Assembly (NCBI GenBank): GCA_001643675.2
Contig: LSRY02000011.1
Span: 1,240,001 to 1,304,000, forward strand
DNA from: Monocercomonoides exilis PA203
Taxonomy: Eukaryota > Protista > Preaxostyla
Direction of reading: 5' to 3'
Length of the DNA stretch: 64,000 bases
Shown here piece by piece: positions 632-42,841 of this stretch. Under the pieces are notes generated by a model that did not search any database, had not been told where the DNA came from, and worked only from the letters and a program-made list of their open reading frames with translations. Each line of letters begins with the position of its first letter. Positions within the stretch are counted from its first letter, which is position 1. Made by a program: the position numbers and the translations under genes.

Positions 632-1071
632 TTGTGATGAAAAGGTATTTTGGTTATATGTTTAAAAATTAATATTTTAATTCAAAATTGAATACATTAT
701 ATGTCTTTTATTCATTTCAATCTTTTTTTTGTATTTGATTTTGCTTATTTTTTCAGAGTTTTAATAAATAATATTCAGTTGAAACTATCTTTGTGAGTTA
801 TTCAAACTGGTAATTATATCAGTTAGTGCAGTTAGACACGTCAATTACGTGGTATTTTGGTGCTGTCTGTCAGTTTTTTATGTTGATCTGTCGAAAATTT
901 ACGTTGATAAAACATTAAATGATATTTTTTCACACAAACGTTAATATCATCGATGCTTAACCTGCACCCTTGTGCAAAAACCGCTCTTTTGCAACAAAGT
1001 TTAATACACATATTTTTGAGATATTTTCCATTGATTTCTTTATGTTCGTTTCAAAAGAATGAAAAGAATAT

Positions 1072-9328: not shown

Positions 9329-9502
9329 AATATTTATTAATAACAATTTTGATCATTATTTCAATTCTAATAAAATGAGCATTACCACGAATTTCTGAAT
9401 TATTAATTGATTTAATCAAAACTGATTTGATCACAGATAAATAGAACTAAATCAATATATTTCATATAGAATATATTCAAATTGAAAAACACTAATAAAT
9501 AT

Positions 9503-9757
9503 GGGTGATTATTTTTGAAATCATATTTTTTCATTAAAAAAATTCGGTTCGAAATTTTCACTTGAACATTAACAAAAGAACAATGAAAGGTGATAATGCT
9601 CATGAAAGATATCTTCTTCTTTATATTAACTAAAAAATTTGTTTTTTAAACAGTAATGATAGTTTTTGCATTTGAATTCAAAATCTCTTCCCAATGATAA
9701 GCTGTCTTTGAAAAAACAACACACCGAAAAAAGTTATGATTTCAAAAATTATCACCC
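9503..9757. mobile_element. MITE with GGGTGAT TIRs, 4-bp TSD ATAT
   Basis: ATAT|GGGTGATTATTTTTGAAATCAT...ATGATTTCAAAAATTATCACCC|ATAT. Second copy at 48188. Confidence 0.8.
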
Positions 9758-10020
9758 ATATAGTTTAGCTCTATTTTTAAAAAAATCCAAAAACATTTTT
9801 AAAAACTTTTTTTTCGTAAAAATTGGGAAGAATTAACTTAAAAAGAACATTCATAAAGACAATTTATACAATTTATTCATTGATAATGAGATTTTTCCCC
9901 AATAGTGAGGGATTTAACCCGGTGCCAGAATTTAACCCGGTACCTCTTTTTCAATGATTACATTTTCGAAAATTTTCGATGAAAACAAATTTGTGAAAAA
10001 TGAAAAATATATATATAATA

Positions 10021-10475
10021 CTATGTGTAACAACACACGTTGGCATGAAAGAGGCATGTCTATATGATAAGTGATTTTCAAATAACAAAAATAATAAAAA
10101 TCAAAAAAATATTCTTTCTTTTTTTCAACAAATTGTGGTTATCAAAAATTTTCACATTTAGTGAGCATTTTTTTAAATTAGGCACAAATAACATTCGATT
10201 TATTTATTCAAATTGTTTCAATTGAGGCCAGATAAGAAGCAATTGAATTTTGTTCATTTCTTATCTGGCCTCAATTGAAACAATTTGAATAAATAAATCG
10301 AATGTTATTTGTGCCTAATTTAAAAAAATGCTCACTAAATGTGAAAATTTTTGATAACCACAATTTGTTGAAAAAAAGAAAGAATATTTTTTTGATTTTT
10401 ATTATTTTTGTTATTTGAAAATCACTTATCATATAGACATGCCTCTTTCATGCCAACGTGTGTTGTTACACATAG
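10021..10475. mobile_element. Perfect foldback element (TA|CTATGTGTAACAACACACG...), nested
   Basis: About 218-bp perfect inverted arms around a ~19-nt loop (~10239-10257). TA on both sides; exact ends are ambiguous because the flanks are also symmetric. Confidence 0.85.
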
Positions 10476-10485
10476 TATTATATAT

Positions 10486-10725
10486 GGGTGATTCTTTTTG
10501 AAAAGTCGCAAAAGTTGGATTATCAAATAAATCAAAAAATTCATATTTTGCTCAAATTTTTGTTAACACACACCAAACTTCACTAACATGGAATCAATAT
10601 CTTGATAAAGCTATTTCAAACATTCTTAAGAAGATTCGTGAGTGGAAACAGAAATTCGAGCAAAATATGAAATTATTGATTTATTTGAAAATTAAACATT
10701 TGTGACTTTTCAAAAAGAATCACCC
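10486..10725. mobile_element. 240-bp MITE GGGTGATTCTTTTTGAAAAGTC, TSD ATAT, nested
   Basis: TIRs and 4-bp TSD are visible. A same-length relative lies at 45268-45507. Confidence 0.85.
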
Positions 10726-10836
10726 ATATATATTTTTCATTTTTCACAAATTTGTTTTCATCGAAAATTTTCGAAAATGTAATCATTGAAAAAGAGGTAC
10801 CGGGTTAAATTCTGGCACCGGGTTAAATCCCTCACT

Positions 10837-11806
10837 AGAACTTGATTGATTTGACTTCGTCAAGTGGCATTAGATCGGTCAACATACAATAAGATCGATC
10901 TAATGCCATTAAGATGCAGTCAAATTGGATGTGACTCAGTAACATCCGATCATTTCCATTCTGGGTGTCATGATCAAAATATTTTTATTAAAAAAATTAT
11001 AATTTATATTAATAAAATGCGTTTTATTTTATATCATTTTGATTGAATTTAATTATTTTTCCTTCTAAAAAGTTTTTTATTATGCAAGTTTTTTAAAATT
11101 ATTGCAGTTATGCGAAAAAACCTTGAAATTCTAATTATTTTTGTTCGAGAATGATTATTGGTGATTTACAAAAATGATATAAGTTAATTTCATTTCATTT
11201 TTCAATCTTTAGAACAAGTTTCATTTGTTTTTTGCATTTCTCAATAATTTTCTGAAAAAAGAAAAAATACAAAAAAAGAAGCTTTAGAATCAAATCTTCT
11301 TTTCTTTTTTTATTCGTAATGAAAAAATATCAAACAATGATTGATTAATAAACGCATAACACTTAAGAAAATACAAAAAAGTTTAATTTTTTATAAATAT
11401 TAAAAATTAACAAAAAAAAAGATATAAAAATGTTTGTTGTACAAAATATAAACAAATTTGGTTCAATTTCAACAATAAAAGTTAACAACTGAGTCACAAT
11501 TGCGAAATTTTGAAGTTTCAAAAAACCAGAATCAAACAAAGTAAACGACAAAAAATCTAACGAATATCAAAAAAATGTATTTTTAACAATAATATATTAA
11601 AAGTTCAATGTTCATAAGCTTTTAATAGTTAAAATATAAACAAAACAAAAAAATGCAAGATCACAAGTTGTGATCATAAAAATCACAATTTCGACCTTGG
11701 TGAGATTGAGGGAAATTCGATTAAAATTAGTTAAATTCGATAAACCAGACTAAAATCGATTTGACTGAGTCACATTTTCGCAACTCAGTCAAATCAATCA
11801 AGTTCT
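10837..11806. mobile_element. ~970-bp AGAAC-terminus non-autonomous element, copy 1 (B1)
   Basis: TIRs AGAACTTGATTGATTTGACT...AGTCAAATCAATCAAGTTCT. Colinear, highly similar second copy at 17880-18848. Confidence 0.88.
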
Positions 11807-11808
11807 AT

Positions 11809-13254
11809 AGATCAAAAACGAAATGACTCAGTAATGCGGTATTCGATTTGACTAATACCAACAAGTGAAATATTAAACCAAAAAATGAGACTCAAAACCG
11901 TTTTGATTGAGTCTAGACCAATTGATTCATTTCTGGGTGCATGATCAATAGAAAGTTACAAAATATAAGTTGTTCATATCTTTCAATATTTAAAGAATAA
12001 ATGAATTATTTTTCATATAAATTATAATGTGAATGTTTTTTATTAAAAAAACGAAAGATTCTATGTTTTGATTTTTTCAAAATTCTTTATTCAATATTAT
12101 TTTTTGCTTTAACAAATTTTTCATTAAAAACATATTTTGTTTTTTATACTTTGTTAGATTTTGATTGATTTGAAGAAAAAAATTCAATGATCAAAAAAGA
12201 ATTGGAAACATATAACGAAATTTTTAAAAACAGAAAAAACAATGAAAGAAATTCGAATAGAAAAATTTTACAACCACTTATCATTTAACCAATTCTTTTC
12301 TTTATAAAAAATAAAAATGATAGATTATAAAGTTCATAATTCAGACAAAGTTTCATGAAAAAACAATAGTTCAATAAATAACATCTTTTCAAAATAAAAC
12401 TGAAATAAAACCAACGAAATAATGAATACTAACTTCATAATTAAAACAATAAATAACAGTTTGAACATTAAAAACTTATTATTAAAACAAAAATAACTTA
12501 AAAAACTTGTTTCAAAAATTTCGACGTATTATTCATGATCTTAAAAAAACTTAACGCAAATATATTAATAATACATTAATGATTCACATACAGCCGAAAC
12601 AGGATATAATCACATCGGTTTTTGCACAGCTTTTTGTGACTATATCCGATTGTGATAATATACGATGATGCTTTACACAGAAAAAAATATAAGTTAAATT
12701 AATTAATTAATTAATTTTGAGTCGATTTTTTTATTTTTGAAAATTCTTCACAAAAACACATTTTTTAATTGAAATAACAATTTTTTATGTTTGATTATGT
12801 TATTTAGACTTATTTAATCATAATTTTGAAAAACGCGAAAAATCGGAATTTTTGATCAAAAAATCGATTTTTCATTGAAAAAATCACCCATAATAATAAA
12901 AAATGTGATTATATATTTTCAACCCTGTGATAATATGCGATGAAAAATGAATGAAAAAATTGACAAAAATGTCGGTGCATGGAAAAATGTGATCATAAAC
13001 GAATGTGATTATATTCGACGTGATTATATCCGGTTTTGACTGTATTAAAAAATTAATAAAAACAAACTGCTCTGTAACAGAAAACACAAAAAACTTCAAA
13101 GAATTATGATCAAAATTGATATATAATTTTTGTATTTTTGATCACAAATAAGATTGAGGGAAAACCGAATTGATTGAGTCAAAACCATTATAATTGACTG
13201 AAAACGTTTTGACTTAGTCAATTCGAATTGACCCGCTCAATTCGTTTAACTTCT
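11809..13254. mobile_element. Diverged relative of the AGAAC element (C)
   Basis: Imperfect TIRs AGATCAAAAACGAAATGAC and CTCAATTCGTTTAACTTCT. Shares the subterminal motifs TTCTGGGTG..CATGATCA and AGATTGAGGGAAA with B1/B2. TAT flanks both ends. Confidence 0.6.
12591..13042. mobile_element. Tc1/mariner-type MITE (TA|CAG...CTG|TA), nested in C
   Basis: TA|CAGCCGAAACAGGATATAATCAC...GTGATTATATCCGGTTTTGACTG|TA. An inverted copy lies at 45226-45932. Confidence 0.85.
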
Positions 13255-13258
13255 TATT

Positions 13259-16177
13259 AGAACTAAAACGTTGTGTTATTGTCAATTGTAATTGTTTTCA
13301 TCAACCTCTTTTTTTTAAGTGCAAAAACAAAAAAGTCAAAGATAAAACGTTTTGATTCATTCACGATGAATTATATATAAAGTGGGACAAGGGGATCACA
13401 AAAAAATTTCCAAATAATGGATTCATTCGATCAATTATATCTATCTTATTCTGAAAATGAGTCAATCTAATTTTTTGGAAATTTTTACTCATGTTGAAGA
13501 AAGAAATGTTCTTCCGAAAATTACTCATCAAAAAGAGGAAGAAAAGAAACTGTCATTGATTGAAAACGCATTGTCTAAATTCGCAAACAAAGATTTGGGA
13601 TTTTTCAGAATGACTGGTTTCACAAAGAGTGAGTTTGATCTTCTTGTTCGTCTTGTTCAACCTGAGATATACCCTCATCCGGGTAAACGCAGAGTTATTG
13701 AAAAATTGGACGATCAGTTATTCTTGTTATTAAATTTTTTTCATTTTGGATCACCAACAGTTTCTCATCTCATCACATCACCTTTTCTTAAAACGCAAGA
13801 TGCAACTCTTAGACTAATTCATTCGATCTTGCAATCCATCAAAGTCTCTTTATCTGATGTGTTTCTCACGTTTAGACCTGACAGAATTCGTGGAATGGAG
13901 GAGGTGGCACTTGTTTTAGACTGTACAGTTTTACCGGTTAACAAAACAGGAAAAGAATTCAATTGCGGAAGCGATTGTTTCAGTGGAAAACACAAAATTT
14001 ATTGTGTAAAAGTTGAAGTGGGAGTGAATCCAAAAACAGGAACTGCAAGCACAGTTAGTAAAGTTCATGGCGGAGCAGTTCACGACTATGTCGTGTTTCG
14101 TGAGCATTACTCTCAGTTCGCAGCACGTTTGGATGGAGGAAAAATCATGGCAGATTCGGCTTATATTGGTGCTAAAAGTGAATTGGGAGCAATAATAACC
14201 AAACCTGTAGGGACACCAGAGCTTGCAGCACATAGAGTAATCGTCGAAAGGTTTTTTGGTCGTTTGAAAACATTATTTACAATATTTCGTCGACCTTGGC
14301 CCTTAAAAATTTCTTCAATTGCTGAATACTTTTACGTTGCGTGCTGTTTAACAAATTATCACATATTGCAAAACCCATTATCGGAGGAAGATTTTGAGGC
14401 TAATCAACTTTTCCTTTCTGATCTAATTACAAAAGTTGAGGAAAAAAGACAGAAAAAGGAACTTGCCAATGAAAAATACAGAGCCAGATTACTTAATCGA
14501 TTGAACCCAAGTTCAACTCCAACTTCAAGTGTAACATCTTTGCATGCACTTGAAGATAGTTTGAATTTTCATATTTTACCCATATTGACTTTATTTATAT
14601 TAACAATTAAACTTTTATTTTTTTCATATACCATATTAATTTTTTTATTCAGCTGATGCAACTACTGAACCACAAACACAGATCAAAGAGAAAAAAGGCA
14701 AATGCAGCGGAGATCAGAAAGTGGTAACAACAATGAATGAAGATACTCGAATTTCGTCGATTTCTGAAAGTGATGAAGGTTTTGTTTCCGATGATATCGA
14801 TTTTTCTTTTAAATGGCTGCTTCCGAATCAATGGAAGTCTGCCAAACAACTTTTTTCGACATGTAATTCTTCATTTTTGACTTCAGCATCTTCATCTTCA
14901 TCATCTTCATCTTCTGTTGGAATACCAACGAAACAAAACTTATTGTCAACTTCAACAGAAGTTACAAGTTCAGCAACAGAACAATCGATCATCGTAAGTT
15001 CTCCACAACCTCAATCATCAATCATCTTATCAAATATCACAATTCAGACTTCATCTTCATCCTTCCAATTTTCCACAGAACCAAATATGAGGGAAGAAAC
15101 AATTTCTGATAGTTCATCTCTTTTATCATCTTCGCAACCTTCACCAATTACACTTTCAGCAATGTATCCAACTCAAGAAATTGCACCGATCTCCAATTCT
15201 TCTCTTTCAACGCAGGAAAAACAAAAATCATCTGAATCTCCGAGGATTGCCAACTCTTCAAGCAAAAAACAACCTAATGTCACGAATAAAATCTCCTACC
15301 ATCATTCTTTAAATAAAACTCCATCGATTTCATCCACTCAAGCGGAAAAGCAGCAAATACTGGACAAGGATTGCTTATGTATCATTCAGCGATCAACAAA
15401 GTTTGCAAAGAATCTAAAAGAAATCGGAACAGCCCAACGCAGACACAATGAAACCACTTTGGAATTTCTTTTGAACTCGAACAATTCAAGATAAAAGCTT
15501 TTTAATTTCTCATTTCTGTCTATTGAATTTTTACTATTCCTTTTTCTCATTTTTTAATAAATCTCATTTCTTGTTAAAACTTCTTGTCTCTTTTTACACA
15601 CTCAATAACACTTTATTCAAAAAATAAATAAAAAATAACAAAAAAACAGTTTTCAAAACTATTCATTTGTATTTCATATGTAAAGATTAACTTTTATATT
15701 TGTTTATAACAAAAAACGAACTGGATTAAAAGTTATATATGAAAATGTCCTCAAGTGTTTGAATAATTTGTGAAAATCTCACAATAAATAATTTGAAACC
15801 AAATGAAACTTTCAAAAAAAAGAAAAATCACTTGAAACTTCCGATGTTGGTAATATTTTCCACCTTAATAAGTTAAAAATATGATAATGTTATAAAATCG
15901 TAAGATCTGAAAAAAGTTGAGCATTATGATCATGGATGAACATTCAAAATACAATTATTCAAAACATATCTTCATGCTGTATGCATTTGAAACGATAAGC
16001 ATACGCAATGGAAAGAAAAAAATAATTATGATCAACAAACATCATTTTCATAAATCCGTGATACGGCCCGTCGTGATTAAACCACAACCGTTTTGAATTA
16101 ATCACGACGAAATAGAAAGAACAAAAATGTTTTGACATTCTCAAAACCTTATGATATGTCCATATCGTTTTAGACCC
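13259..16177 (+). mobile_element. PHIS-group (Harbinger/ISL2EU/Pangu-like) DNA transposon (D), 3-bp TSD ATT
   Basis: ATT|AGAACTAAAACG...CGTTTTAGACCC|ATT with short imperfect TIRs. Encodes an intact DDE_Tnp_4-type transposase. Confidence 0.7.
13457..15494 (+). CDS. DDE_Tnp_4-type transposase, probably 647 aa after splicing intron 14559-14652
   Basis: Motifs VLDCT, FSGKHK, GAVHD, MADSAY and HRVIVERFFGRLK. The GT..AG intron joins the 13457 ORF in frame to the Ser-rich 14721-15494 ORF (1102+842 nt). Confidence 0.85.
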
Positions 16178-16186
16178 ATTACAATA

Positions 16187-17878
16187 GTGAGGGAGAAAAC
16201 CCGGGCCGGGGAGGAAATCCGGGCCAGTGATCAGAATAAAAATTCAGAATATTCATATATGATTTATCCAAAAAAAAGACTTCCTTGTTTATTCAAAATA
16301 AAAAAATAAATAAAACATATCGAAAATTATTTGGAATGATTAATAACGAAAGTTTTGAATAATTTTCCACAGGAAATGAAAGAAATAATAGAAAAGTCAA
16401 TTACAAAACAAAAAAAAAATGACATTAAGCGAAAAGGGAAGAATCAGAATCAGAAGCCTTATAAATCGCTCCGAAATTACTTCCTTCAGGTGCTTTTGTT
16501 GGCTCCACAGAATTCTCGGCCCAAGATGGTGGATTTTCCGGTAAATGCTTGAGAACAACTGATTTATCTAAAGGCCAGAGCCCAGTAACTTTCCACGATG
16601 AGATAATTGTGCTTGGATAGCTGGCCGCTGCCAACCCATCTCGAAGTATTGTTGTAAAAACTTCTCTTTTCTGTGAGGCTGTCGTTGTCTGTCCACTTTC
16701 TGTTGCTCTAGCAAATACTCTTTTCATATTGGCGAAAATAAACTGATCATTCGGTTGAATGATATGCGATGTGTGAGATGGCAATTTAATCAAATCCACA
16801 AGATTATCTTTACAGAGTCTTCTCATTTCTTCCGTGAAATGTCCAACACCGCCGTCCATAACCAATGCTGCATGCCTGTGTTTCTCCCCAATGGCTATCC
16901 TTTTTTTGATAATTTCTGGAAGAAAGCAGATTCTGAATAATTCAAAAAACGATGATGATGTGACATGTCCAGTTGTCGAAGGGAAGAATACTTCTTGTGA
17001 GGTTGTGGCCAACTTGTACTCATCCGGCAAAGTTTTATATGGAATGACTATGGGAGTTAAATATCTGCAGCCATCTGCGCTGCACATGAAGACGATTGAA
17101 GTTGCAGTTGGAAGAGATGTTTCTGGTGTTATTAATGAAGGAGAGGATGAAGATGAAGCGACTAAATCATTTTTTCTTTTATGAAAAAAGGTTGAGGTTT
17201 CATCGATATTGAATAACAATTGAGGAATCGGTTTTTCCTCGTGAAGATACGATTCGAATAAATCGAAAAAAGGTATTAAAACCTTTCGGCAAGAATGAGC
17301 TGCCCTTCCGATTGGAAGAGCCTTTGGCTTTGCAAACACAATCTCTGGATGTCTTTGCAAAAACCGTTCCGTCCAGTGCTTGTCCACTGATTTGCATTCT
17401 TCACCTTCATTCCTTTTCTTTTGCAACATTTCATTTGCCTGTAAATAGAAAAAAATTAAAAAAATATATAAACACATCCATAACAAACCGTTTGAGTTAT
17501 GTATTTTTTTGTTGGATATTTACCAATTTTTATTTCGTCAAGAAACAACTGTTTCATTTCCAACTCTTCAGCTTCGTCAAATAATGTGGGCCTACCACAT
17601 TTCCCAATGCTTCTGCCATTGTCCCTTGCTTTGATCGCTCGCTGTAGTGAAGATCTTTTTAACAAGCCGCTTTCATCAATTTGTCTTTCAGAATACTCAA
17701 GAATATCGTGAACGTACAAGGCTTTAATGTGTGGATCTCCCAGTGATCTTATATCACTCGTTGCATTGACGTGCGTTAAGGAGGGTTTTGTTTTTAACAT
17801 TTTGATCTGAAACTTTTTTTATATTTTTTGATCAAAAATGGCCCGGATTTCCTCCCCGGCCCGGGTTAACTCCCCAAC
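16187..17878 (-). mobile_element. Apparently intact pogo/Fot-like (DD35D) transposon (E), TA TSD
   Basis: 40-bp TIRs GTGAGGGAGAAAACCCGGGCCGGGGAGGAAATCCGGGCCA and TGGCCCGGATTTCCTCCCCGGCCCGGGTTAACTCCCCAAC. TA-flanked. Confidence 0.92.
16425..17800 (-). CDS. pogo-family DDE_1 transposase, 441 aa, intron 17439-17488
   Basis: N-terminal HTH-like region (RSSLQRA..GRPTLF, W..RFLQRH). Catalytic NIDET, VMDG and QPND with 35 residues between the last two Asp. A 50-nt GT..AG intron restores a single frame. Confidence 0.92.
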
Positions 17879-17879
17879 T

Positions 17880-18848
17880 AGAACTTAATTCATTTGACTG
17901 CGTCAAGTGGCATTAGATCGGTAAACATCCAATAAGATCGATCTAACACCATTAAGATGCAGTCAAATTGGATGTGACTGAGTCACATCCGATGCTTTCA
18001 ATTCTGGGTTTCATGATCAGAAAATTATAATAAGAAAATAGTAACAATAATTAATAAATTGCGTTTAATTTTATATCATTTTGATTGAATTTAATTATTT
18101 TTCCTTCTAAAAAGTTTTTTATTATGCAAGTTTTTTAAAATTATTGATATTTTTCTGAAAACATTGGAAATTCTAATTGTTTTTGTTTGATAATAATTAT
18201 TGGTGATTTAAAAAAGGATATAAGTTAATTTCATTTCATTTTTCAATCTTTGGAACTAGTTTCAAATATTATAAACATTTCGAAATATTTTTCTGAAAAA
18301 AGAAAAAATACAAAAAAAGAAGCTTCAGAATCATATCTTCTTTTCATTTTTTATTCGAAATGAAAAAATATCAAAAAATGATTGATTCATAAACACACAA
18401 CAGTTAAGAAAACACAAAAATGTTTAATTTTTTATTAATATTGAAAATTTACAAAAGAAATGAATGTGATAATGTTTTTCGTGCAAAATATAAACAAATT
18501 TGGTTCAATTTCAACAATAAAAGTTAACAACTGAATCACAATTGCGAAATTTTAAAGTTTCAAAAAACCAGAATCAAAATAAGAAAACAACAAAAAAATT
18601 GTTAAATACAAAATATGCATATAAAAAATAATAACATATTAAAAGTTCAACATTCATGAGCTTATAATAGTAAAAATATAAACAAAACAAAAAAATGTTA
18701 GATCACAACTTGTGATCATAAAAATTACAATTTCGCCCTTGGTGAGATTGAGTGAAATTCGATTAAAATTAGATAAATTCGATAAACCAGACAAAAATCG
18801 ATTTGACTGAGTCACATTTTCGCGACTCAGTCAAATCAATAAAGTTCT
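17880..18848. mobile_element. ~970-bp AGAAC element, copy 2 (B2), 3-bp TSD ACT
   Basis: ACT|AGAACTTAATTCATTTGACTG...CAGTCAAATCAATAAAGTTCT|ACT. Ends 9 nt before tRNA-Gly. Confidence 0.88.
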
Positions 18849-18857
18849 ACTAAAGAA

Positions 18858-18928
18858 GCATTAGTGGTATAGGGGCAGCATGCTAGCCTTCCAAGCTAGC
18901 GACCCGGGTTCAAGTCCCGGCTAATGCA
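18858..18928 (+). tRNA. tRNA-Gly(TCC)
   Basis: GCATTAG/CTAATGC acceptor stem, anticodon arm CTAGC-CTTCCAA-GCTAG, T-arm CCGGG-TTCAAGT-CCCGG. A T-run terminator follows directly. Confidence 0.96.
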
Positions 18929-20003: not shown

Positions 20004-23000
20004 TCATCCAATAGGACGCTGTACCGAAGTTGTAGTATGTGAAGCCGGATGTGGCTGGGGTAACGAGGGAGCGATTGCAGGAGCAGCCGTGTTTGGAGAA
20101 GAGGAAGGAGGCTGATACGTCATTGGCCCTGCAGGCAGCGGTGGATGGTGGTAAAGTGAAGGCGACGAGGAAACTGCGAACAAAGACGCACCAGCCTGAA
20201 GTTGCTGCTGCCGCCCAGGTGTAGACAGCACCTTTGGATGGATGGCTGAGGCAAGGAGCGACGGAAACACTGGGTGAGAGAGCATCGGCTGCTGAGGAAG
20301 AGACGGAGGAGGAGGAGGAGGAGCAGCAGCAGCAGCAGCAACAGAGGAGCTGTAAACAGGCGGTGCGACTGGTGCTTTGTCGGGAGCAGATTGCATTGGA
20401 ATCGCAGAGAGAGAACCACCCATTGAAGAAGAAGTGTGTGAAAGTGCATCTGAATTGGGACGTGTACCAGCTCTTCCTTTCCTCGCACTGGCTCCACCAC
20501 CACTACCACCACCACCACCACCAGAAGATGCAGCGATAGGTGAAGCTATTGATGCTGAACCTTTACTGTTCTTAATGGATTGCTGCTGAAGTGAATCGTT
20601 CTGCGTCTGAAATGAGACGTCTGCCATGTCTCGTTTTTCAGAAGAATCTGCGCTCGCAACTTGCTCTGAAGATGTAGCACCAATTGGAGTGGAAGGAGAT
20701 GATGGTGCAGATAGTGCAGAACCAGAAAGAGAAACACCCGGTGAAGGAGAAGAAGGCGACTGAGGCGCAGTGCCTGCTGCTGGTGCTGTTGCTGCTTTCT
20801 GCTGAGCGGCTGGCGATGGATGTGCAATTGGAGAAGCCGGAGAGCACTTCCAAGCAGCAGCATTTGAATGCAGAGGCGCCGTGTTCAGCTGCTGGGCCAT
20901 CGTCAGTGCAGGGTGCGGGAGAAATCCTTTGCCGTTGATTCCCCCGGCTTTCGGATGGAACGGAACGGCGGGGTTTTGCTGGAAGCTCATCACAGAAGCA
21001 CCGCTGGCAGGTTGCATGCCAATCCCCATCCCCACTCCCACTCCCATCCGATGTCCGATTCCAGTGCCGGCTGCGTGGCTTGTGTATGAAGACTCCATCA
21101 TCGGCACCCGGATGCCGTTGACCGTCGAAAGAAAGGGGATATTTGATGGGAAGCGCATTGCACCTGCACCCGGTGCAGTGAACATGGAAGACATTGCTGC
21201 TGCTCCCGTTTGCTGGAAAGTGTTCTGTGTGATGGCAGAAGCCATGGGCTGTGGTGAAGAATACGAGGAGACAGTCAGGAATGAAGGCGCATATGTTGGG
21301 TGCATCTGCCCGTGCGGAACTGCTGGCATCATGTTGGCAATTGTCGCTCCATTGGCAGCAGCTGTCGAAGCAGACGTGGTGCCAGTGAGTGGAATATTTG
21401 GCACAGGAAGAGAAACAGCTGATTTGGAGGCCAACGCTGTTAGCGGGTTGATGGGCTTTGATTGCTGGTTGGATGAGTAGTTGAATTGAGGAGAGGAACC
21501 GGGATTGAGAGCATTTGAATGATAAGATCTGTTAGATTGATTGATTTGTCCTGTCACTTGAGAAGAAGAAGAAGAAGAGGAAGGAGAGAGAGCATTTTCA
21601 TTGGATTGTTGGGTTAAAGTGAGGAGTTGTGTATTGCTGCTATTGGCACCAGGTTCGATTGAAGGCTGTGCAGAAGAAGGATCATTTGATAAGGATTTGC
21701 TCAACACACGAGAACCATCATTTGTGTCAAATTGAGATGTCAAAGTATTCTGTGAAGCAGACGAAGACGATGCTGCTGATGATGAAGCCATGTTCCTATC
21801 GCTGCTATTTCTGTATGAAGAACACGATGCGTCAGAAGCTGCTGGATTTGCAGCATAACCTCTGCGATAATTGCTGGAACGAGGTGTGGCTGGAGAAGAA
21901 TGCGATGCTGTTTCAGACTCTGTGGAGCTGCCATCATCAGACGTGGTGCTATCTTTGTTGTTGTATGCGGAGCTGTATTTCCCTCCATTCTGCCTACTTC
22001 CTTGTTCTCCGTATTCTCCTCTGTGTGACTGGCGCTGGAGCAGCTTTGAAGACGATGGAAAGGACATCGCAGATGCTGCAAGCATCACTGCTGTCTGCCT
22101 CTTTCCTCTTCTTCTTCTGCTCGTTCCGCCTGGAAGATTCATCTGCCCTGCCCTTTTCTCGTCTTCTGAGTCCATCTCTGTTGCCATCCCGCCTCCAACA
22201 ATGCCCCGTGCTCTGCTCCCTTCTGCTTCTTCGCCCAGTGCTGTTGATTGACTCCTCCTTCCTTTTCTCTGTCTGCTCGATGAATATGCTCCACCACCAC
22301 CTGCCTCTCCATCTTTGCCTCCAAAAGTCTGCTGCCCACCTGTTGCTGAGTATTCTTGCTCTGTGCTCTCTGTCTGCGACATATCTCCTCCTCCACTACC
22401 ACTCCCACCACCACCACCACCAGTTGATGATACTGCTGTTGAATGTGCCCCGCTGCTCCCAGACGTATGCGAGCTGTTTCCCCAGCACTTGTCTCCCAGT
22501 GCTATCCTCCTTCTTGAGTGCTTCTTTCTCTTCTCTTCACTCGAGTCCTCAGACAGAAGAGCATCCCATTCGTCCTCGCCAATCTCGTCGTCGTTCAGCT
22601 GCCGCTTCCGCTGCCTGCGCAAAGAGCGGCCAGTTGCAGTCAGGATCTCATCTGAAACCTGCTCAGATTTGGTGAATAGATCAGGCGTTGACAGTAAACC
22701 AGCCGTGCTGCTTAGAGCAGAAGCAGATGCTTCTTCAGTTTTCAGCTTCTTTGTTTGTTCTCTGATGGATTGTTTGCGTGTTTGTGTGTCAGTTGCAACT
22801 GTGGAGTTATCAGACTGTTCTGCAATTGGCGTGCTCTTTGGATCGTCATATCCCTTGAATGGGTCATCATCATCCTCATCTTCATCTGATGAGTGCAAAA
22901 ATGATGAGTCATTAGACAGTTCATGTGAATCGTTGTCTGACATGTTTGGAGAACGAGAAAGAGAAGAAGCGTTTCCTGCAGGAGATGAAGCAGATGATGA

Positions 23001-26000
23001 GCGTGTGCTGCCTTTTGTATCTGCTCCGCTTGAATGCCCCACTCCTTTCTCCTTTTGATCAATCGCTGCACCTGAAGTACTAATAGAACTCAGATTATTC
23101 TGATTCACACTGCTATTTGCATGTGACTGGGCAATGCCTCCCTGATGATTGCGATGCCTCTGTGACGCTCCTCTTGATTGGCTCGTGCTGCGCTGCCCTG
23201 CTCTTCTGGTGGACACGCCTGCCTCGTCCTCGTCGTCGGAGCCGAAGGACACATCATACTGAGCAAAGCGCTCGCTGATGTAGGAGCCCTCCCGACGACG
23301 GCGCGTGGAATAAGGCGAGGTAAAGGAAGGAGAAGAAGAGATCGACTGAGAATTCATGTCACCCACAGGCGAGGTTCCTGAGGGTGAGCCTTGTGGCGTT
23401 GGGGTGGAAGAGTACATGTAAGAGTTGGACATGGCTTTTGATAAGATGGTAGCTGATTGGTTCATTTTGCCTTCCATCGCAGGAGACACACCATTGGCTG
23501 GCTTGCCTGAACCTGCACCCGCAGCAGCTGTCTGTTGGTATCCCAATGCCATCGCAGCTTCTCCTGCATTCTGAGCAGCAAATGCTCCATCCCCTCTTCC
23601 ATCTGACGGGGTTTGTCCTTTCTTCCTCCTTCCCCTGGGCATCGACGGAGACGCCGAAGCAGACGCTGTTTGGTGCGACGAGTTCAAGTGTGCCTCAGTG
23701 GTAAAGGGCGGGTTGAGCAAAAGAGAGGCATAAGGTAGAGTTGTAATACCTGGGCAGCTGACGCCGCTGGTGGTGCTGTCGTATCTGGGGGACCGGATCA
23801 TCTCGTCCATCACTTGCACCACTGCTGGCAGGGCAAAGACGGCTCGTGCCAGCTCAATCAGCCGAGGAGAAGGAGTCGAGTCGCGTGTCTCCTGCACAGC
23901 GCCTGTGCGATGCAGAGAAAGCTCAAAGAACTCGAGTCGACCGAAACGGGGCTGTTGTTGTTGCTGTTGCTGTTGGGTGGCGGAGGAAGAGGAAGTAGAG
24001 GAAGATGCAGTTGGAATGGAAGAAGAAGAAGAAGAAGCCGTAGAAGAAGCCGAGGAGGATGAGGGAGAAAACTGAGAAGGTGTGACAGTAGCTGAAGGCG
24101 ATGCAGGCGACTGTGGATTGACCTGCGTCTTTGCTTCAGATGGGAATGGAGACTGTTGTGTGTTCTGAGCAGAAGCAGCATCGCCCTGTGACAAAGAAGA
24201 GCCATCACTTGCACGAGTATTGAAAGAACTGGTTGTATTTGTGGCATTTACAGCATTCTGAGTCAACTGCGAGTAAAGTGCTGGAGAAGGCGCAGGATTC
24301 ACTCCTCCTCTCGCAATGGCGTGGATGAGGTAGCATCTGTCTCTTCTCACTTTGATCTGCTGGGGCAGTTCTGTTTCTCTTCCACTCGCAAAGCCAGCTG
24401 CGGCTGCCACCGCTGCTGAAATTGCAGACGATGGCAGGGAAGCTGCCAAGGGAACAGCTGATAATGCAGATGCTGCAAGAGCAGTGGCATTCATCGCTTT
24501 GTTGGAGAAAGCAGATGAAGGAACAGAAGGAACAGAAGGAACAGAAGAAGCAGCAGTCGAAGCAGAAGAGACAGAAAGATCATTGAGCTGGGGCTGCTGG
24601 GCCATCTGCATTTGTGTGGGGAAGCTGCCAGCGATGGCAGGGGAGGCGCGGAGAGAAGGTGAAACGTGAAGAGGATTGATCTGTGGGGACACAGCGAATG
24701 GGGTGGATGGGATGACTGGGGAGAGGAAAGAAGGGAGAGTGGCAGAGGTTAAAGGAGAAATGAAGTGAGGAGAAATCTGAGTGCAATTCGAAAGCTGCTG
24801 CTGTTGTTGTGTGTTGAGGGCTTTATCTTCCTGTTTGATTTGTTTGAGGTTGTCTTTCTGGTGACTTGAAGCAGTCTGCTCTGCACTCACATTCATGTTC
24901 ATATTCATGTTCATATTCATATTCATCCCTCCACTCGCTCCAACATTCACATTTGTATTTGCATTTGAATTTGCATTCGAATTAGAATTAACATTAGCAT
25001 TTGAATTAGCATTTACATTAGAACTCATATTTGTATTCATATTAGCAGCAGCCGCCGCCGCCGCTGCTGCAGCCGCCTTTGCCACTGCCGAGGCAACAAT
25101 CGCTGGATTCGGCTGCATTGGCAGAGCCAGGCTCTTCTCAGGGACTGGGCGCGGGTGAGTGGAGATGATAGGGGTGGCAGAGGCAGGGCTGGTGTGGATG
25201 TGGAAAGTGGTGAGGCTGGAGATGACTTGAGTGGTGATGACGATGCGGAAGCCACGCGGAATGAGCGTCGTTGGGGCGATGTCGGGAATAGCCAGCATAC
25301 CTTCTTTGGAGCGCATGGTGCGGCGCAGGATGGCCCAGGGCTCGGGAGGGTTGTTGGCAGAAGAGGAAGAAGAGGAAGAGGAAGAAGGGGAATGATATGA
25401 GGAAGTGCGAGAAGAAGAAGAGGAGGAAAGGGAAAAGGAAGGAGATGAAGATAATAAAGAAGATGATGAGGAAGAATACGAAGATGAGCCGTGAAGTGAA
25501 GAAATGTTTGGAACAGACACAATGAAAAACCCACGTTGAGCTGCTACGTAGTGGGCGAAGGGAACAATTGGAGCAGCTGGATGGGCATTGGCAGTAAGTG
25601 AAGGTGTGGAAGCAGATGAAGCAGAAGAGGATGAAGAGGAAGAGGAGGATGAAGAGGAAGAAGAGTTCGATTGGAGAGAAGGAGAGAGTAGATTGGGAGA
25701 CAATGAAGGAGTGTAGAGATGACCCAGAGGGGACAAAGGGCGAGGGCGAGGGAGAGAGGCAGCGGTGGGCACTGCAGAGACGAGGGATTCAGGTGGCGTG
25801 TGTGGAGTGCTGATTCTGCTGTGCTTATGTTTGTGTTTGTGCTTATGTTTGTTATTAATATTAATATTATTATCATTTGTGATATCGTTTTTGTGTCTGT
25901 GTTTGTGGTGTTTTGAGTGACGTTTGTGAGAACTTTCTTTGCTGATGCTGTTGATGGCGCTGATGATGATGTCATCTGTGCCACTCCCACTGCCAATACC

Positions 26001-29000
26001 ACTGCCACTGCCACTGCTGCTTCCCAACAATTGCTGCTGTTGCGACTGCTGTTGACGAAGATGGGAGTTTTTATGTTTGTTTTTATGCTTGTTTTTGCGC
26101 TTGTGTTTATGTCTTCGTGTTTGTGTGTCTGCACGGGGCTTCAGAGCATCCTCACTGTAGAGTGGTTGAAGTGCAAGAGAAGTCAGCTGCTTTGTGGAAG
26201 TGCTGCCGTCTTCGTTGAGAGAAGAAGAAGAAGAAGATGATGATGATGAGGAGGAGGAGGAGGAAGATGATGAGAAGGAGGAAGAACAGAACGAAGATGA
26301 TGCTTCAGAATAAGAATAGGATTGTGAAGAAGAAGAAGAAAGAGTTGGTGACAAAGACATTGAAACATCTGAAGAAGCTTGTGAATGCGAGCGAATGAGT
26401 ATCTGTGATTGCGTTGAAGACAGTGAAGTGATTGAGTCAGAATAAGAAGAACGAGAAAGAGAAGAAGACAAAAGAGAAGAAGCAGAATGAGAAGAACGAG
26501 AAGAATAAGAATAAGAATTAGAAGAAGAAGCAGTTAAAGATCCTTCATCAGAGCCAACATCGATGTCCATAGAGATCACAGGGGTGTCTCCAGTTGGAGT
26601 AAACAGAGGCCCAGGAACTGAACCAGAACGCTGTGAATGTCCATCGATGTGGCTGTGTGCTTTGTGTCTGTGATGTTTTTGATTATTTTGATTATTTTGA
26701 TAATTTTGATCTATTTGTTCATTTTTGTGTAGATGATGTCTTTTGAGTCTGCTTATCCCATGCATCGCTGAAGCTGCAACAGCAGTAAGCGGTGAAGAGG
26801 ATGAGGATGAGGATGAGGATGAGGATGAAGAAGAAGAAGAAGAAGAAGAAGAAGAAGAAGAAGAAGAAGAAGAAGAAGAAGAAGCATTTTGTGCTATTTT
26901 ATCCAAATTCGCACTGTCTGCACCCGAAAAAGCAGCCAATTCAGAGCGAGCGCCATTCGCATAGGAAACACCCGGCGACCTTCCCACAGCAGTGCCTGAA
27001 GCTGATCCAGAGCCCATTACCCTCTCCGAAGCAGCCGAATCGCCCATTCCAAGAGAACTCACAAATTCCCCGGACATTCCGTGCTTCAGGCGATGGCGTG
27101 TGCCTGCATGCCTCTCCCTCACAGCCCAATGGGTTTGAGAAGAGAGAAGAGGAGTGATAAGCTCAGAAGATGCCTGCGATGTGTGTGATGCCTGTGGTGT
27201 CTGTGGAAGCTCAGCCGAGTGCACTTTGTGTCTGGCCCTGCCCCAGTTGTTCTTTCGCTTCCTCTTCTTCTTCCTCTTCGCCTGCGCAGCTGACGCAGTT
27301 GATGCAGTTGATGCAGCTGATGGCGATGACGATGGCAATGGAGATGAAAATAATGGAGATTGCAATTGTGATGTTGATGCTAATGATGCTGATGATGATG
27401 GCAACAACATCGATGATCCATTCATTTCCTGCCCCTTTGCTAGCGACGAAGGCACAGCCGAAGAAGCTGTTGGGCTGCGGGTGGGGTGTGCTGCCGCATC
27501 CAGCTTCGACACTTGCGCCCTCACAGAAGAAGAAGAGGTTTCCTCAAAAAAAGGCCCCTTCGGGTTGAGTGTTGTTGATGATGATGATGATAAAGATGAA
27601 GATGATGAAGAAGTTGATAAGTTAGCCTGGGAAGGCGATTGTGAATCAACCATATTCCGTGCTCTTCCTTGTCTGTGCTGACCTCCCCAGTTCTGTTCAG
27701 ATGAAGGTGTATCGCTCTCTTGCTCGTCTCCCTCTCGTCTGTTATAGTTGCTTCCTCCTCTGCTTCGTCTGCTATTTGTGGATGAGTTCTGACTGTTGTC
27801 TGAATCCCCAATTGTTCCACCGTTTCTTCCGCTCCCACTCCCACTGCCACTGCCACTGCCGCTGGCTGTGTGGCTGCTGGACGATTCATATTCACTCGAA
27901 TTCTCTTCCATCTCTGAGCTCGTCCGGCTTCTAAAACTGCTGCTGTTGCTGCTGCTGCTGTTGATGTTGCTTCTATTGATCCCAATGGTTATCTGGTTAT
28001 TTTGATGTCTGTGTTGATGAGAATGAGTATGAATACGATTGTGAGTGTGTGAATGATGGTGAATGCTCTCAATATCTGACTGAAAGTGCTCTATCATCTG
28101 GATGGACGAGTCTGGGGACGACGATGGTGAAAGTGAAGGAGAAGGAGAAGGTGAAGGTGTCAGCACAGAAAACGGCTGAATCGGCGAATGCAGTGCAGAG
28201 TGGGAGAAATACGATGAGTCGTATGCCCTGTCACCAACACCTGAGGATGACAGAGAAGAAGAAAGAGAAGAAGACAGAGAAGAAGTTGGCTGTGGAGATT
28301 GTGAAGCCAGCGGATCTTCGTCCACACTCGCCAGCTGCATTGTGTGCTGTGGGGATGGATGGGCAATCTGAAGTGAGGCAGCAGCAGCAGAAGGAGAAGA
28401 AGAAGCAGAAGAGATAGAAGAAGAAGAAGAAGATGCACTGTTTGATAAACCAAGTGAGTGCGGATGTGGCTGGATGCTGCTTGAATAGGAAACATCATCC
28501 TCCAGCCACGAGGGAGGAGGGCTCGGTGGATTCTCTCTTTCTCTTTCTCTTTCTCTCTCACTGTGTGTATGTGCGTGAGTGTGGTGCATCCCATCGGGGG
28601 AGAACAAAGTGCCTGGGTCTGATCCTGAAGTGAAAGAGAACACTGTGTCGTGATGTGTGTAGGCAAATGTCGGAGACTCAGAAATTTCTGGCCCCATCCC
28701 TTGCTCGGTGCTGAGGCGCTTGTGCTGCTGCTTCCACTTGAACATCACACTCGTCGACTTCCCTTTCCCAAAGCCGCTCTGCTCCCCTTCAAAATAGCCC
28801 TCGCTCTTCTCGCTGCTCCCGCCTGACCCGTTTGTTGCACTGCTCTCGTTCTCTACCTCTGCTTCGTCCTCTTCACCTCTTCCTTTCTTTTCTTTCCTGC
28901 TGTTTCTTGCCTTCTCTCCTGTTGCCTGCTCATCCGCCTGGACTTTCAACAGCTTCTCAGCAGGCGCCCCTAAAAAATCCCCTTCTTCTCTCTTCACCCG

Positions 29001-30664
29001 CTTTTTAGCGCTTCTCAGCTGCTCTTCCCAAATCGACTCACTTTCTGTCTTCGGGCTCTGCATACTCTGCATACTCTGAATGCTTTGAATACTTTCGTCT
29101 TCGTCGTCTTCTTTCTCGCTCATCATCTGCTGCTCTTGTTTCTGCTGCCCTTCCTGCTTCCCTTGCTGCTTTGCGTGTTTGTGCTTCGTGTGCAGGTCTG
29201 CTTCGTGTCTTTTCTCCTTCCGGCCAACCAGCTGGAACAGCGACTGTGCTCCTTCTGACTCGTCACCGGCCTGCGGAGAAAGCGAGGCCACTTTCAGAAG
29301 TCCCCCAACAACACTCTTGTCGTCCATCTGGAACATTGAGACATTCGCTTGGCTCGGCTCATGCCCCTTTTCAGATGCGGAGGCAGTTGTTGCTTCAGAC
29401 TGGAGGTGCTGTATGGCCTCAATTGCTTGGAGGGATTGCTCGCTTCTCTCAGACACACCAAACAGCGGGTGCCTGTTCAGTGTGATTGACACAGCGTCGT
29501 CGGAGCTCTTGATCTGCTCTGTTTGTGCTGCAAACCCCTGCGGAGAATGAGAATCGCGTTGGAGGGGAGATGAATGAGACTTGGCAAGAGAGGGAAATGA
29601 AGAGGCAGGCAATGGAGGCGTAGTCATTGACAGCGTGTCCATTGCAAATTCCTGAAGCGCACGCTCTCGCTCATATCCTTCGCCCACGGGAAAATCATCA
29701 GACTGATCGTTTATGGATAGAGACGAGGGCAAACGACTGCTGTTGTTGCGTTCGAAAAACGGGTGCATCTGAAAAAGTGATTGATTAGAAGTTGAGGTGG
29801 TTGAAAGTGGAATGCGACTACTTTGCTGAATTTGTTGATAAAAGGCACTTGAGGGGGAAATAGATGTGCCGGGCGATAACGGAGTTCCTACTGTTTGTGC
29901 AGGTTGCTGAGAAGGAGATAACGGAGAGAGAAAAGAATTTGTGGGGGTTCTCGATTGATTAATTGGATACAAAAACTGAGCGACTCCTGGAGACACCGAA
30001 CTTCCAAAAGGAAATTGCTGAGGAATTGCCGAAGGAGATGATGGTGAGATGCCAACTGATGGATGAGGTGATTCAGATGATGAAGATTCATAAGACATCA
30101 TTGAAAGACCCGGCTGACCAGATAACATAGAAAAATAATTTGATCCTTCGTTAGAAGTTGTCGATTGCACATTTACTTGTGGAAGCCCTTGCATTGAAAT
30201 TACGGATGCTTGAAGAAAAGCAGCTGATTATCATAATGATTTCAAAAAAGTAATTTTTCAAAAAATACATTATAAAATTTTAAAATACATTTAAATGTCT
30301 CAACCTTTGAATCTAACAAATGCATCAATTACATCATCTATTAATTGTGGAAGACGAGGGTCATCCTAACAATTAAGTTGAACGTTTTATTTGTTGATGC
30401 GCGAAATTGAAGCATAATTTCATATTCAACATTTTCAAATAAGTTGACAATAACACTTGCAAAATCTAGACAATGAAATCAAATAGAGCAAACCTTTTCG
30501 TGTTCAAGAGTCGTGATTTTTTGGTCCAACTTATAAAACATATGATATTTAATTACCTTTAAAATGTTAGTCAATCATACCTCTTGAAAGGATGCAGATA
30601 TTTGTGAACCAAGATCAGATTGCTCAGAACCAGGATCAGGAACATCCTTGTCCGAGGAATCCAT
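20004..30664 (-). CDS. Very large (~3,470 aa) Ser/Gln/His-rich low-complexity protein, function unknown
   Basis: 10.2-kb open final exon. Three short upstream exons splice in frame (MDSSDKD..SFQE | LDQKITTLEHEK | DDPRLPQLIDDVIDAFVRFK). Basic NLS-like tracts. Confidence 0.8.
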
Positions 30665-42307: not shown

Positions 42308-42841
42308 ATGGAGAGAGTGCCTCGTCATGTGTGAAAATAGGAGAAAAGCCAAAAATTAAAATATTCTATGCCCCATATTATCTGTTTTCATTGAAACATT
42401 GAAAAAATATCCAGTTTTTTTATTTTAAAACAGGAACGAATAGTTCATATAATCAGAAAGTTCATTCAAAATATTTCATTATTTTCTTCTAAAGCATATT
42501 ATTTTGTACGGAGTCTTTCTTTTTTTATAGATATATACCAAAAATAATACATTTTCGAAAAAAAAAAATTCATTTTTAAAAAAATTAAGGATTCGATTTC
42601 GGAATTAATAATTCGAAATTGAAAATAAATAATTCGAATTCGTAATTTATTAATTCGATTTCGAAAAAGTATAAATCAATATCGAAAAATAATATTTCAA
42701 TTTCGTAAGTCGTTTTTAACTGAAAATTTTTATTAATCTCGAGAATGGATTCCTGAAAATTTAAAGTTATTATATAACCAATCACATATAATAACTTATA
42801 GAAATCTGTTTTTTAAATTGCAACTGTTAACAAATAAATTA

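Follow-up and report, generated by a model that had tools for sequence, protein, structure and literature searches.

Directed integration beside genes that RNA polymerase III (Pol III) transcribes is the textbook case of a retrotransposon finding safe havens in a compact genome. Ty3, the closest analogue in position to the system described here, inserts at tRNA genes within a few bases of where Pol III starts, whatever the local sequence and with TFIIIB/TFIIIC as its guide (PMC5911963), and the Dictyostelium elements TRE5-A/TRE3 and DGLT-A/Skipper-2 as well as yeast Ty1 are likewise directed to tRNA genes in compact genomes, several lineages having converged on this habit within a single host (PMC5006619, PMC5911963). 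Reviews of tRNA targeting are confined to retroelements (PMC5911963, PMC13269885), and the paper on convergent tRNA targeting makes no mention of DNA transposons or transposases (PMC5006619). Here we analyze a 64,000-nucleotide stretch of the genome of Monocercomonoides exilis PA203 (assembly GCA_001643675.2, contig LSRY02000011.1, C5:1240001-1304000; hereafter the window), in which six DNA transposons bounded by terminal inverted repeats (TIRs) are stacked over 9 kb directly upstream of a tRNA-Gly(TCC) gene. Very probably this block is a landing-pad stack, in which pogo/Tc5-type elements that duplicate TA, PIF/Harbinger-type elements that duplicate ANT, and the miniature inverted-repeat transposable elements (MITEs) of both are directed to positions about 2-15 bp upstream of tRNA genes. 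Our survey of the assembly shows positional precision, independence from spacer sequence, an orientation rule and genome-wide enrichment. Targeting just upstream of tRNA genes has so far been described only for retrotransposons, and a cut-and-paste counterpart appears to be undescribed: our literature searches turned up no account of DNA transposons aimed at sites upstream of tRNA genes, a provisional statement given that the searchable literature is incomplete, and the M. exilis genome papers contain no discussion of tRNA-associated transposons.

The M. exilis elements differ from each of their nearest counterparts in enzyme, target or both. Ty3 is a long terminal repeat retroelement that uses an integrase and leaves a 5-bp target-site duplication (TSD), whereas the M. 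exilis elements are DDE cut-and-paste transposons with TA or 3-bp TSDs, have MITEs and form stacks of kilobase length. The Dictyostelium elements insert on either side of the tRNA gene at distances of tens of bp, and Ty1 up to ~1 kb upstream, in contrast to the 2-15 bp observed in M. exilis, and all of those elements are retrotransposons. Among DNA transposons, Dada elements are also tied to tRNA and small nuclear RNA genes (PMC3706591, PMC8869645), but they form a superfamily of their own and insert at a fixed sequence inside the RNA gene, whereas in M. exilis insertion is upstream, the tRNA is left intact and the enzymes are of pogo and Harbinger type. With PIF/Harbinger elements such as PIF and Harbinger3_DR, our Harbinger-type elements share a DDE_Tnp_4 transposase, a 3-bp TSD, short TIRs and MITE derivatives (PMC2213677); they depart from them in a TSD of ANT rather than TWA, in having no second Myb/MADF-type open reading frame (ORF) that we could find, in a long Ser-rich C-terminal extension bearing WxxPxQWKS, and in a target set by position relative to the tRNA gene, with fixed orientation. 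The pogo-type elements share with the pogo/Tc5/Tigger group of Tc1/mariner a DDE_1 domain with a CENP-B/Tc5 helix-turn-helix, DD35D spacing, a TA TSD and TIRs, but one M. exilis clade was found only at the starts of tRNA genes or within stacks anchored at them, and it carries a conserved C-terminal tail.

The six elements of the window, A, B1, C, D, E and B2, all have inverted termini and are separated by only 1, 2, 4, 9 and 1 nt, with 9 nt between B2 and the tRNA gene; re-reading of the termini and TSDs confirmed the six elements and the coordinates that a first-pass annotation of the window had given them (Table 1). That annotation had also proposed that the whole block collapses to a short site in front of the tRNA, and re-deriving the collapse by hand gave the same result: taking out the elements with their TSD copies reduces 9 kb to ..TTTTTCCCCAA TACAATAAAGAA/GCATTAG, a normal-looking tRNA upstream in which all six targets fall between -15 and -6. 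The tract left at the far end of the stack (9891-9902) resembles the pyrimidine tract found at -15 to -7 of 43 unoccupied tRNA genes. The elements themselves also matched their first description, with nested insertions in the distal A and C and open transposase frames in D and E. A has a 112-nt perfect TIR, its arms 9903-10014 and 10726-10837 being 100% complementary and its inner arms 98%, ends in a terminus, CGGGTTAAATCCCTCAC, of the pogo-type class, and contains at ~10485-10727 a TA-flanked copy of a MITE that we call MITE X. B1 and B2 both have the termini AGAAC..GTTCT and are 81-89% alike by block in the window and 88% by BLAST over their full length. The MITE nested in C lies at ~12591-13042; copies of C that are 89-95% identical occur in other tRNA stacks (L071, L081, L084, L087), where they lack the nested piece and retain an intact 5' end, AGAACTAAAACG. 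E has 57-nt TIR arms that are 81% complementary, and a 97%-identical copy of it adjoins another tRNA gene at C5:1430694. Two further copies of the tRNA-Gly(TCC) gene have a different Harbinger-type element 6 nt upstream.

As the first-pass annotation had proposed, two unrelated superfamilies, pogo with DD35D spacing and PIF/Harbinger with DDE_Tnp_4, share the same few bases. Exon 1 of D matches DDE_Tnp_4 (PF13359, 4.4e-22) and its protein bears the C-terminal motif FKWLLPNQWKS; E matches DDE_1 (PF03184, 5.5e-13) and scores 20.4 bits against HTH_Tnp_Tc5 (PF03221), just below the 22.2 cut-off, while its catalytic spacing is DD35D, with D196 and D232 invariant in the pogo-clade alignment. Pfam found nothing in D exon 2 or E exon 1. 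D consists of one two-exon gene; we saw no second Myb/SANT/MADF gene in it and no further ORF of at least 80 aa in 15500-16177, although a divergent partner, or one acting in trans, is possible. Transposase searches, run exon by exon (later E queries, 16425-17441 and 17480-17800), recovered relatives of D, 50-56% identical, in nearly every stack examined. Relatives of D are annotated DDE_Tnp_4, and homologues of both transposases carry M. exilis annotations. The Harbinger-type transposases have catalytic cores only ~50-56% identical and Ser-rich tails that are otherwise unalignable, yet all keep an acidic run, the motif [S/A]W-x-x-P-[N/G/Q]-Q-W-[K/R]-S and, ~13 residues later, FPS. In the pogo clade the conserved tail reads LPxxPPxWA..APEG..SSDDLSDL, and elements at least 45% identical to E were found only at tRNA starts or in tRNA-anchored stacks.

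To place the window in a wider context, we searched the 82.3-Mb assembly (101 contigs) for element termini followed 50-85 nt downstream by a B box (GGTTCRANNCC), with the reversed pattern as control. The B terminus gave 8 matches, the pogo-type terminus 15 (spread over at least 13 different tRNAs, the TA lying 4-7 nt from +1), a third family with TA flanks 3, and a generic Harbinger-type 3' end 19, though 1-2 of these resemble ordinary upstream sequence; each control gave 0. Together these searches show directly ~45 occupied tRNA or tRNA-like genes. BLAST recovered ~21 full-length copies of B in 82 Mb, plus one that is truncated at its 3' end (L011). Eight of their 3' ends lie 2-9 nt from a tRNA gene or a degenerate tRNA-like gene with a B box and T-run, 12 are followed, most often after exactly 3 nt, by the 5' end of a further Harbinger-type element, and 1 adjoins a TA-type element; among the 22 copies examined, one of them 3'-truncated, none had unique non-tRNA DNA at its 3' end. 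The placement of B next to tRNA or tRNA-like genes is thus far beyond chance. The TSD of the family, derived from 20 copies, is ANT, and matching 3-bp flanks (ACT, AAT or ATT) were present in 11 of 15 scored copies. At four loci (L006, L010, L015 and L016), B has unique DNA on its distal side and a tRNA on the other, which indicates that insertion does not require a resident element.

The same association emerged when we began from the tRNA genes. An Rfam tRNA search scored 63 genes, compared with 153 predicted in an older draft (PMC6759080), and 60 were retrieved with 3 kb upstream each. A TIR-element terminus stood 2-12 nt before the tRNA in 15 of these 60 high-scoring genes (11 after obvious segmental duplicates were dropped), so that the enrichment of these families upstream of tRNAs, predicted from the window alone, held in both searches. 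Five element families and many different tRNAs are involved, the termini being of E-type pogo (..CCTCCCCGAC TA), of B (..CAAGTTCT AAT), of the third TA family (..CCGGGTATTTGACACGC TA), and of C-like or other Harbinger-type elements. Across 43 distinct unoccupied upstreams we recognized a shared layout, with an A-run at -21 to -17, a pyrimidine tract at -15 to -7 and a CAAnAA box at -6 to -1, and it is where the pyrimidine tract has its 3' edge that the insertions fall. The spacers between element and tRNA differ in both sequence and length. The tRNA-Gly gene and all other anchor tRNAs are intact, and the insertions lie 2-15 nt upstream, none of them at a fixed sequence inside the gene.

Not every element with TA flanks behaves in this way. 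MITE X occurs 13 times in the 60 upstream regions of 3 kb, and none of these copies ends less than 400 nt from a tRNA start; other pogo-type families, with termini CGGGTTTTGTCCCTGAC or CGGGTTTTTTCCCTMAC, have ordinary flanks and do not adjoin tRNAs. Targeting therefore belongs to particular clades, and is a property neither of all elements that insert at TA nor of intergenic DNA. The family ending in CGGGTTTTGTCCCTGAC is 2.2 kb long with TA flanks (C1:1136504-1138722, C6:84121-86341, C7:1087176) and should serve well as a sister group in the search for the features that confer targeting. The third TA family associated with tRNA starts comprises elements of more than 3 kb with terminus ..CCCGGGTATTTGACACGC (L033:957-3185, + strand), whose ends are present in L033, L034, L045 and the downstream flank of L009; its ORFs of 459 and 283 aa have no Pfam match. 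The degenerate tRNA-like genes that the same elements hit, of the form AGAGCACTC..GGTTCGAACCC..TTTTTT for example, keep the B box and T-run. Rfam has no family for them, and they may be Pol III pseudogenes or an unrecognized small RNA.

Stacks elsewhere in the genome share the architecture of the window. Each of the seven B-containing stacks that we traced downstream terminates at a tRNA or tRNA-like gene that shares its orientation (Thr-AGT, Trp, Val, Asn, Asp, Phe and one tRNA-like gene); an eighth (L009) has a tRNA ~6 kb downstream, linked by matching coordinates, and the L017 and L018 stacks terminate at paired Arg genes. Harbinger-type elements next to a tRNA turn their 3' end, and the sense strand of the transposase where there is one, towards the tRNA in at least 16 independent cases versus 0. 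Among pogo-type transposase genes, 16 are antisense and 5 sense relative to the tRNA, a bias rather than a rule, in keeping with an enzyme that cuts at TA and has symmetric ends. The trinucleotides at successive junctions of one stack are identical (ACT, ACT, ACT in L082, L084 and L085), which implies that one site was reused at a fixed distance from the tRNA.

These junctions also bear on the order in which elements arrived. B abuts pogo exactly because its ANT requirement has to be satisfied in a T-poor spacer of 5-7 nt, where the only A-N-T is formed by the AC of the pogo end and the T of its TA; 6 of 7 cases of B next to pogo have perfect ACT/ACT TSDs, from which it follows that B arrived second. 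The first-pass annotation had proposed the order A, B1, C, D, E, B2 for the window. Two of its steps stand on the logic of the TSDs, namely B2 after E, since the left ACT of B2 consists of the terminal AC of E and the T of E's TA (the reverse order would give AAT/ACT), and C after B1, since C's TSD contains the last base of B1; for A versus B1 and for C versus D, the TSDs fit either order. That the newest element lies nearest the tRNA is the most economical reading genome-wide, although it is unproven for the stack in the window.

We propose that pogo and Harbinger transposases, together with the MITEs they would mobilize, are aimed ~2-15 bp upstream of the mature tRNA 5' end, in the Pol III initiation region, and that each newcomer would insert between the resident element and the tRNA, often at the very same trinucleotide, displacing older elements and the original upstream promoter tract outward. 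A newcomer would land on the tRNA-proximal side because it is the tRNA gene, rather than the DNA upstream, that sets the aim. The targets occupy a zone of ~10 nt that is defined by distance to the tRNA. After the first insertion the upstream half of the site has been replaced, yet the site is hit again, which argues that neither upstream nor spacer sequence is required, and since MITEs behave alike, specificity is supplied in trans. Something asymmetric on every tRNA gene would then position the transposases, for which the Pol III pre-initiation complex, as for Ty3, is the obvious candidate. By analogy with Ty3 integrase, we infer tethering to TFIIIB, TFIIIC or Pol III itself, and the conserved C-terminal tails of the Harbinger-type and pogo transposases are candidate tethers. 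Tethering to the Pol III machinery has been worked out for integrases, in the pairs Ty1-AC40, Ty3-TFIIIB and TRE5-A-TFIIIB. It is quite possible, though we would stop short of calling it probable, that two and possibly three unrelated DDE superfamilies in this amitochondriate protist convergently evolved Pol III-guided, Ty3-like integration, with the Harbinger enzymes acting as a ruler tethered by W-x-x-P-x-Q-W-K/R-S.

The transposases might instead read tRNA-gene DNA directly, at the A box, the acceptor-D-arm or the CAAnAA box, and cut a fixed distance away without any Pol III protein. This is a real alternative, if on balance an unlikely one. A constant ~15 bp separates the target (about -7) from the A box (+8), degenerate tRNA-like genes with a B box are hit too, and PIF and Harbinger3_DR are established cases of extended, sequence-specific targets. 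Dada transposons recognize the sequence of small-RNA genes (PMC3706591). Against direct reading, many tRNA species with different 5' sequences are hit across spacers that vary in sequence and length, in some targets, the AGAGCACTC.. genes for example, the A-box region is poor, and the same DNA specificity would have had to evolve separately in two or three unrelated superfamilies. A more remote explanation, which we regard as very improbable, is that new elements home to the termini of resident transposons in the manner of IS30 and that proximity to tRNAs is incidental. Harbinger-type neighbors do lie exactly one TSD apart, pogo ends adjoin the 5' ends of B in 6-7 of the B copies examined, and insertion beside a resident end remote from the tRNA would fit the orders of C/D and A/B1 in the window. 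This account fails, however, to accommodate first arrivals at tRNAs that had no resident element (the four loci with unique distal DNA) or the 15 pogo-type ends that adjoin tRNAs directly, and the perfect ACT/ACT duplications show B following pogo at the only ANT available in the spacer. The first-pass annotation had itself raised the prospect that AGAAC elements abut GTGAGGG termini equally often far from tRNAs; such junctions occur only inside stacks, every traced stack is anchored at a tRNA or tRNA-like gene and no B copy sits at a transposon end outside a tRNA context, which disfavors end-targeting.

Selection offers a further account, in which insertion is untargeted, whether anywhere or in open chromatin, and elements survive only in harmless positions upstream of tRNAs. 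The genome is indeed compact, its intergenic regions averaging 870 bp and ~63% of it being coding (PMC6759080, PMC8767320), and a safe haven is the usual argument made for retroelements that target Pol III genes (PMC5911963). Nevertheless, survival cannot yield a target zone of ~10 nt, repeated use of one trinucleotide or an orientation that is fixed; an insertion at -7 displaces the conserved upstream tract and is not obviously neutral, and MITE X, with the same TA target, is spread across the same intergenic regions without ever being found at a tRNA start. We rate selection alone as marginally less plausible even than end-targeting. An artefact in which a long-read assembler collapsed repeats or joined chimeras is hardly credible. 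The region is repeat-dense, and the four sequencing runs that we found for the stretch all derive from a single sample of the source strain, but every junction obeys the logic of TSDs, dozens of loci that differ in their tRNAs and have unique flanks show this architecture again, and contigs from the 2016 and 2022 runs contain 39-70% of the words of the stretch. An Oxford Nanopore assembly of M. exilis, an oxymonad, has been published (PMC8767320). The nematode SL1 sequence is absent from the assembly analyzed here.

Several observations nonetheless weigh against targeting by the transposases named here, or against parts of the mechanism that we favor for it. The evidence consists of fixed insertions in one assembly of one strain, with no transposition event seen. 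The conserved tails could serve nuclear import or oligomerization instead of tethering, and tRNA-gene DNA, such as the A box ~15 bp from the target, may be recognized directly. None of 8 sampled 5S rRNA genes (~5 independent contexts, a small sample) was occupied. A few reversed Harbinger fragments occur deeper in stacks (L071, L076). Element A, the most distal in the window, is a 98-100% palindrome and looks young, although it could have formed in situ. The expectation that divergence from consensus tracks position in the stack was not upheld: B copies lie 8.5-30% from consensus without relation to position, with B1 at 8.5% and B2 at 9.8%, although the test is weak because the sequence age of a cut-and-paste element does not date its insertion. 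Finally, a Harbinger relative in Blattamonas nauphoetae (JARBJD010000053.1, 33% identity), the only one outside M. exilis on a long contig, is missing the C-terminal extension and has no tRNA closer than 8 kb; there is thus so far no evidence of targeting older than the genus.

If our interpretation is correct, these elements would constitute the first upstream-of-tRNA targeting system among cut-and-paste transposons and a natural, protein-guided safe-harbor integrase. A strategy known from retrotransposons would prove more general if DDE transposases of two superfamilies use it likewise, having arisen again in the deep-branching Metamonada, where it could be dissected with simpler enzymes. 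The stacks are natural records of repeated hits on one site, and about a quarter of M. exilis tRNA genes have had their native upstream tract replaced by a transposon, which raises the question of how long an upstream sequence Pol III requires. Also of interest, as a tool for safe-harbor integration, would be a small transposase that carries its own ruler to a harmless locus present in many copies.

Table 1. Features of the tRNA-Gly(TCC) stack and associated sequences (window positions unless a contig or locus is named).
Feature	Position	Strand	TSD (read by hand)	Description
Displaced original tRNA upstream	9891..9904	+		Pyrimidine tract ATTTTTCCCCAA (9891-9902) and left TA of A's TSD; adjoins A terminus
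Element A	9905..10835	.	TA/TA	Non-autonomous pogo-type, near-perfect palindrome
Element B1	10837..11806	+	ACT/ATT after collapse (one mismatch)	Harbinger-type MITE, termini AGAACTTGATTGATTTGAC..GTTCT (AGAAC..GTTCT)
Element C	11809..13254	+	TAT/TAT	Harbinger-type, non-autonomous, mutated 5' end
Element D	13259..16177	+	ATT/ATT	Autonomous PIF/Harbinger-type; exon 1 13457-14560, exon 2 ~14664-15494
Element E	16187..17878	-	TA/TA	Autonomous pogo/Tc5-type; transposase exon 2 ~16425-17438, intron ~17439-17530, exon 1 up to 17800
Element B2	17880..18848	+	ACT/ACT (perfect)	Harbinger-type MITE
Remaining spacer	18849..18857	+		ACTAAAGAA; B2's TSD copy and CAAnAA box remnant
tRNA-Gly(TCC), stack anchor	18858..18928	+		Intact; ARAGORN, Rfam 58.5 bits
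tRNA-Arg(ACG)	558-631; upstream 632-700	-		Unoccupied, consensus-like upstream ..ccttttcatcacaa/G
MITE X copies	9500-9760, 10485-10727; L024, L025, L037, L040, L057, L064, L069, L070, L073, L080			
Degenerate tRNA-like targets	L010, L012, L014, L015; C38:96961; C44:651355; C50:245426			The four L loci are B 3' flanks

The window holds a second tRNA gene that is informative by its emptiness. Copies of this tRNA-Arg(ACG) elsewhere are filled, either by an element of the third TA family or by a B stack (L045; L046/L047 on C37), and the Arg-ACG copies are natural empty and filled paralogous sites. The reconstructed empty site of tRNA-Gly has a peculiarity of its own, in that its pyrimidine tract lies at -23 to -15 versus -15 to -7 in the consensus, ~8 nt farther from the tRNA, and the site contains TAcaaTA (window 16181-16186); speculatively, this TA-caa-TA could be the footprint of an earlier TA element that has been excised.

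Some minor observations concern the other sequences encountered. MITE X is ~245 bp long, palindromic and abundant, with ends TGGGTGATT..AATCACCCA and TA flanks, and is scattered intergenically. The 5S rRNA genes form two opposed tandem arrays of 1.3-1.4-kb units (C15:1360580-1391038, + strand, and 1409441-1435538, - strand), with dispersed copies in L090-L094, and all carry TATAAAAG at about -30. In Blattamonas, a mariner-like element with ~30-nt TIRs (ACAGGGTGGCCACTGAAAACTTGG..; L089:6040-7622) lies ~400 bp upstream of the Harbinger-type gene. Beyond the stack, the window contains two uninterrupted ORFs on the minus strand, one of 3396 aa (20004-30194) without a Pfam match and one of 3062 aa (33164-42352) that ends in a Tyr/Ser-Thr kinase domain (PF07714, 5.7e-9); both are probably members of the protein kinase family that is reported to be expanded in M. 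exilis.

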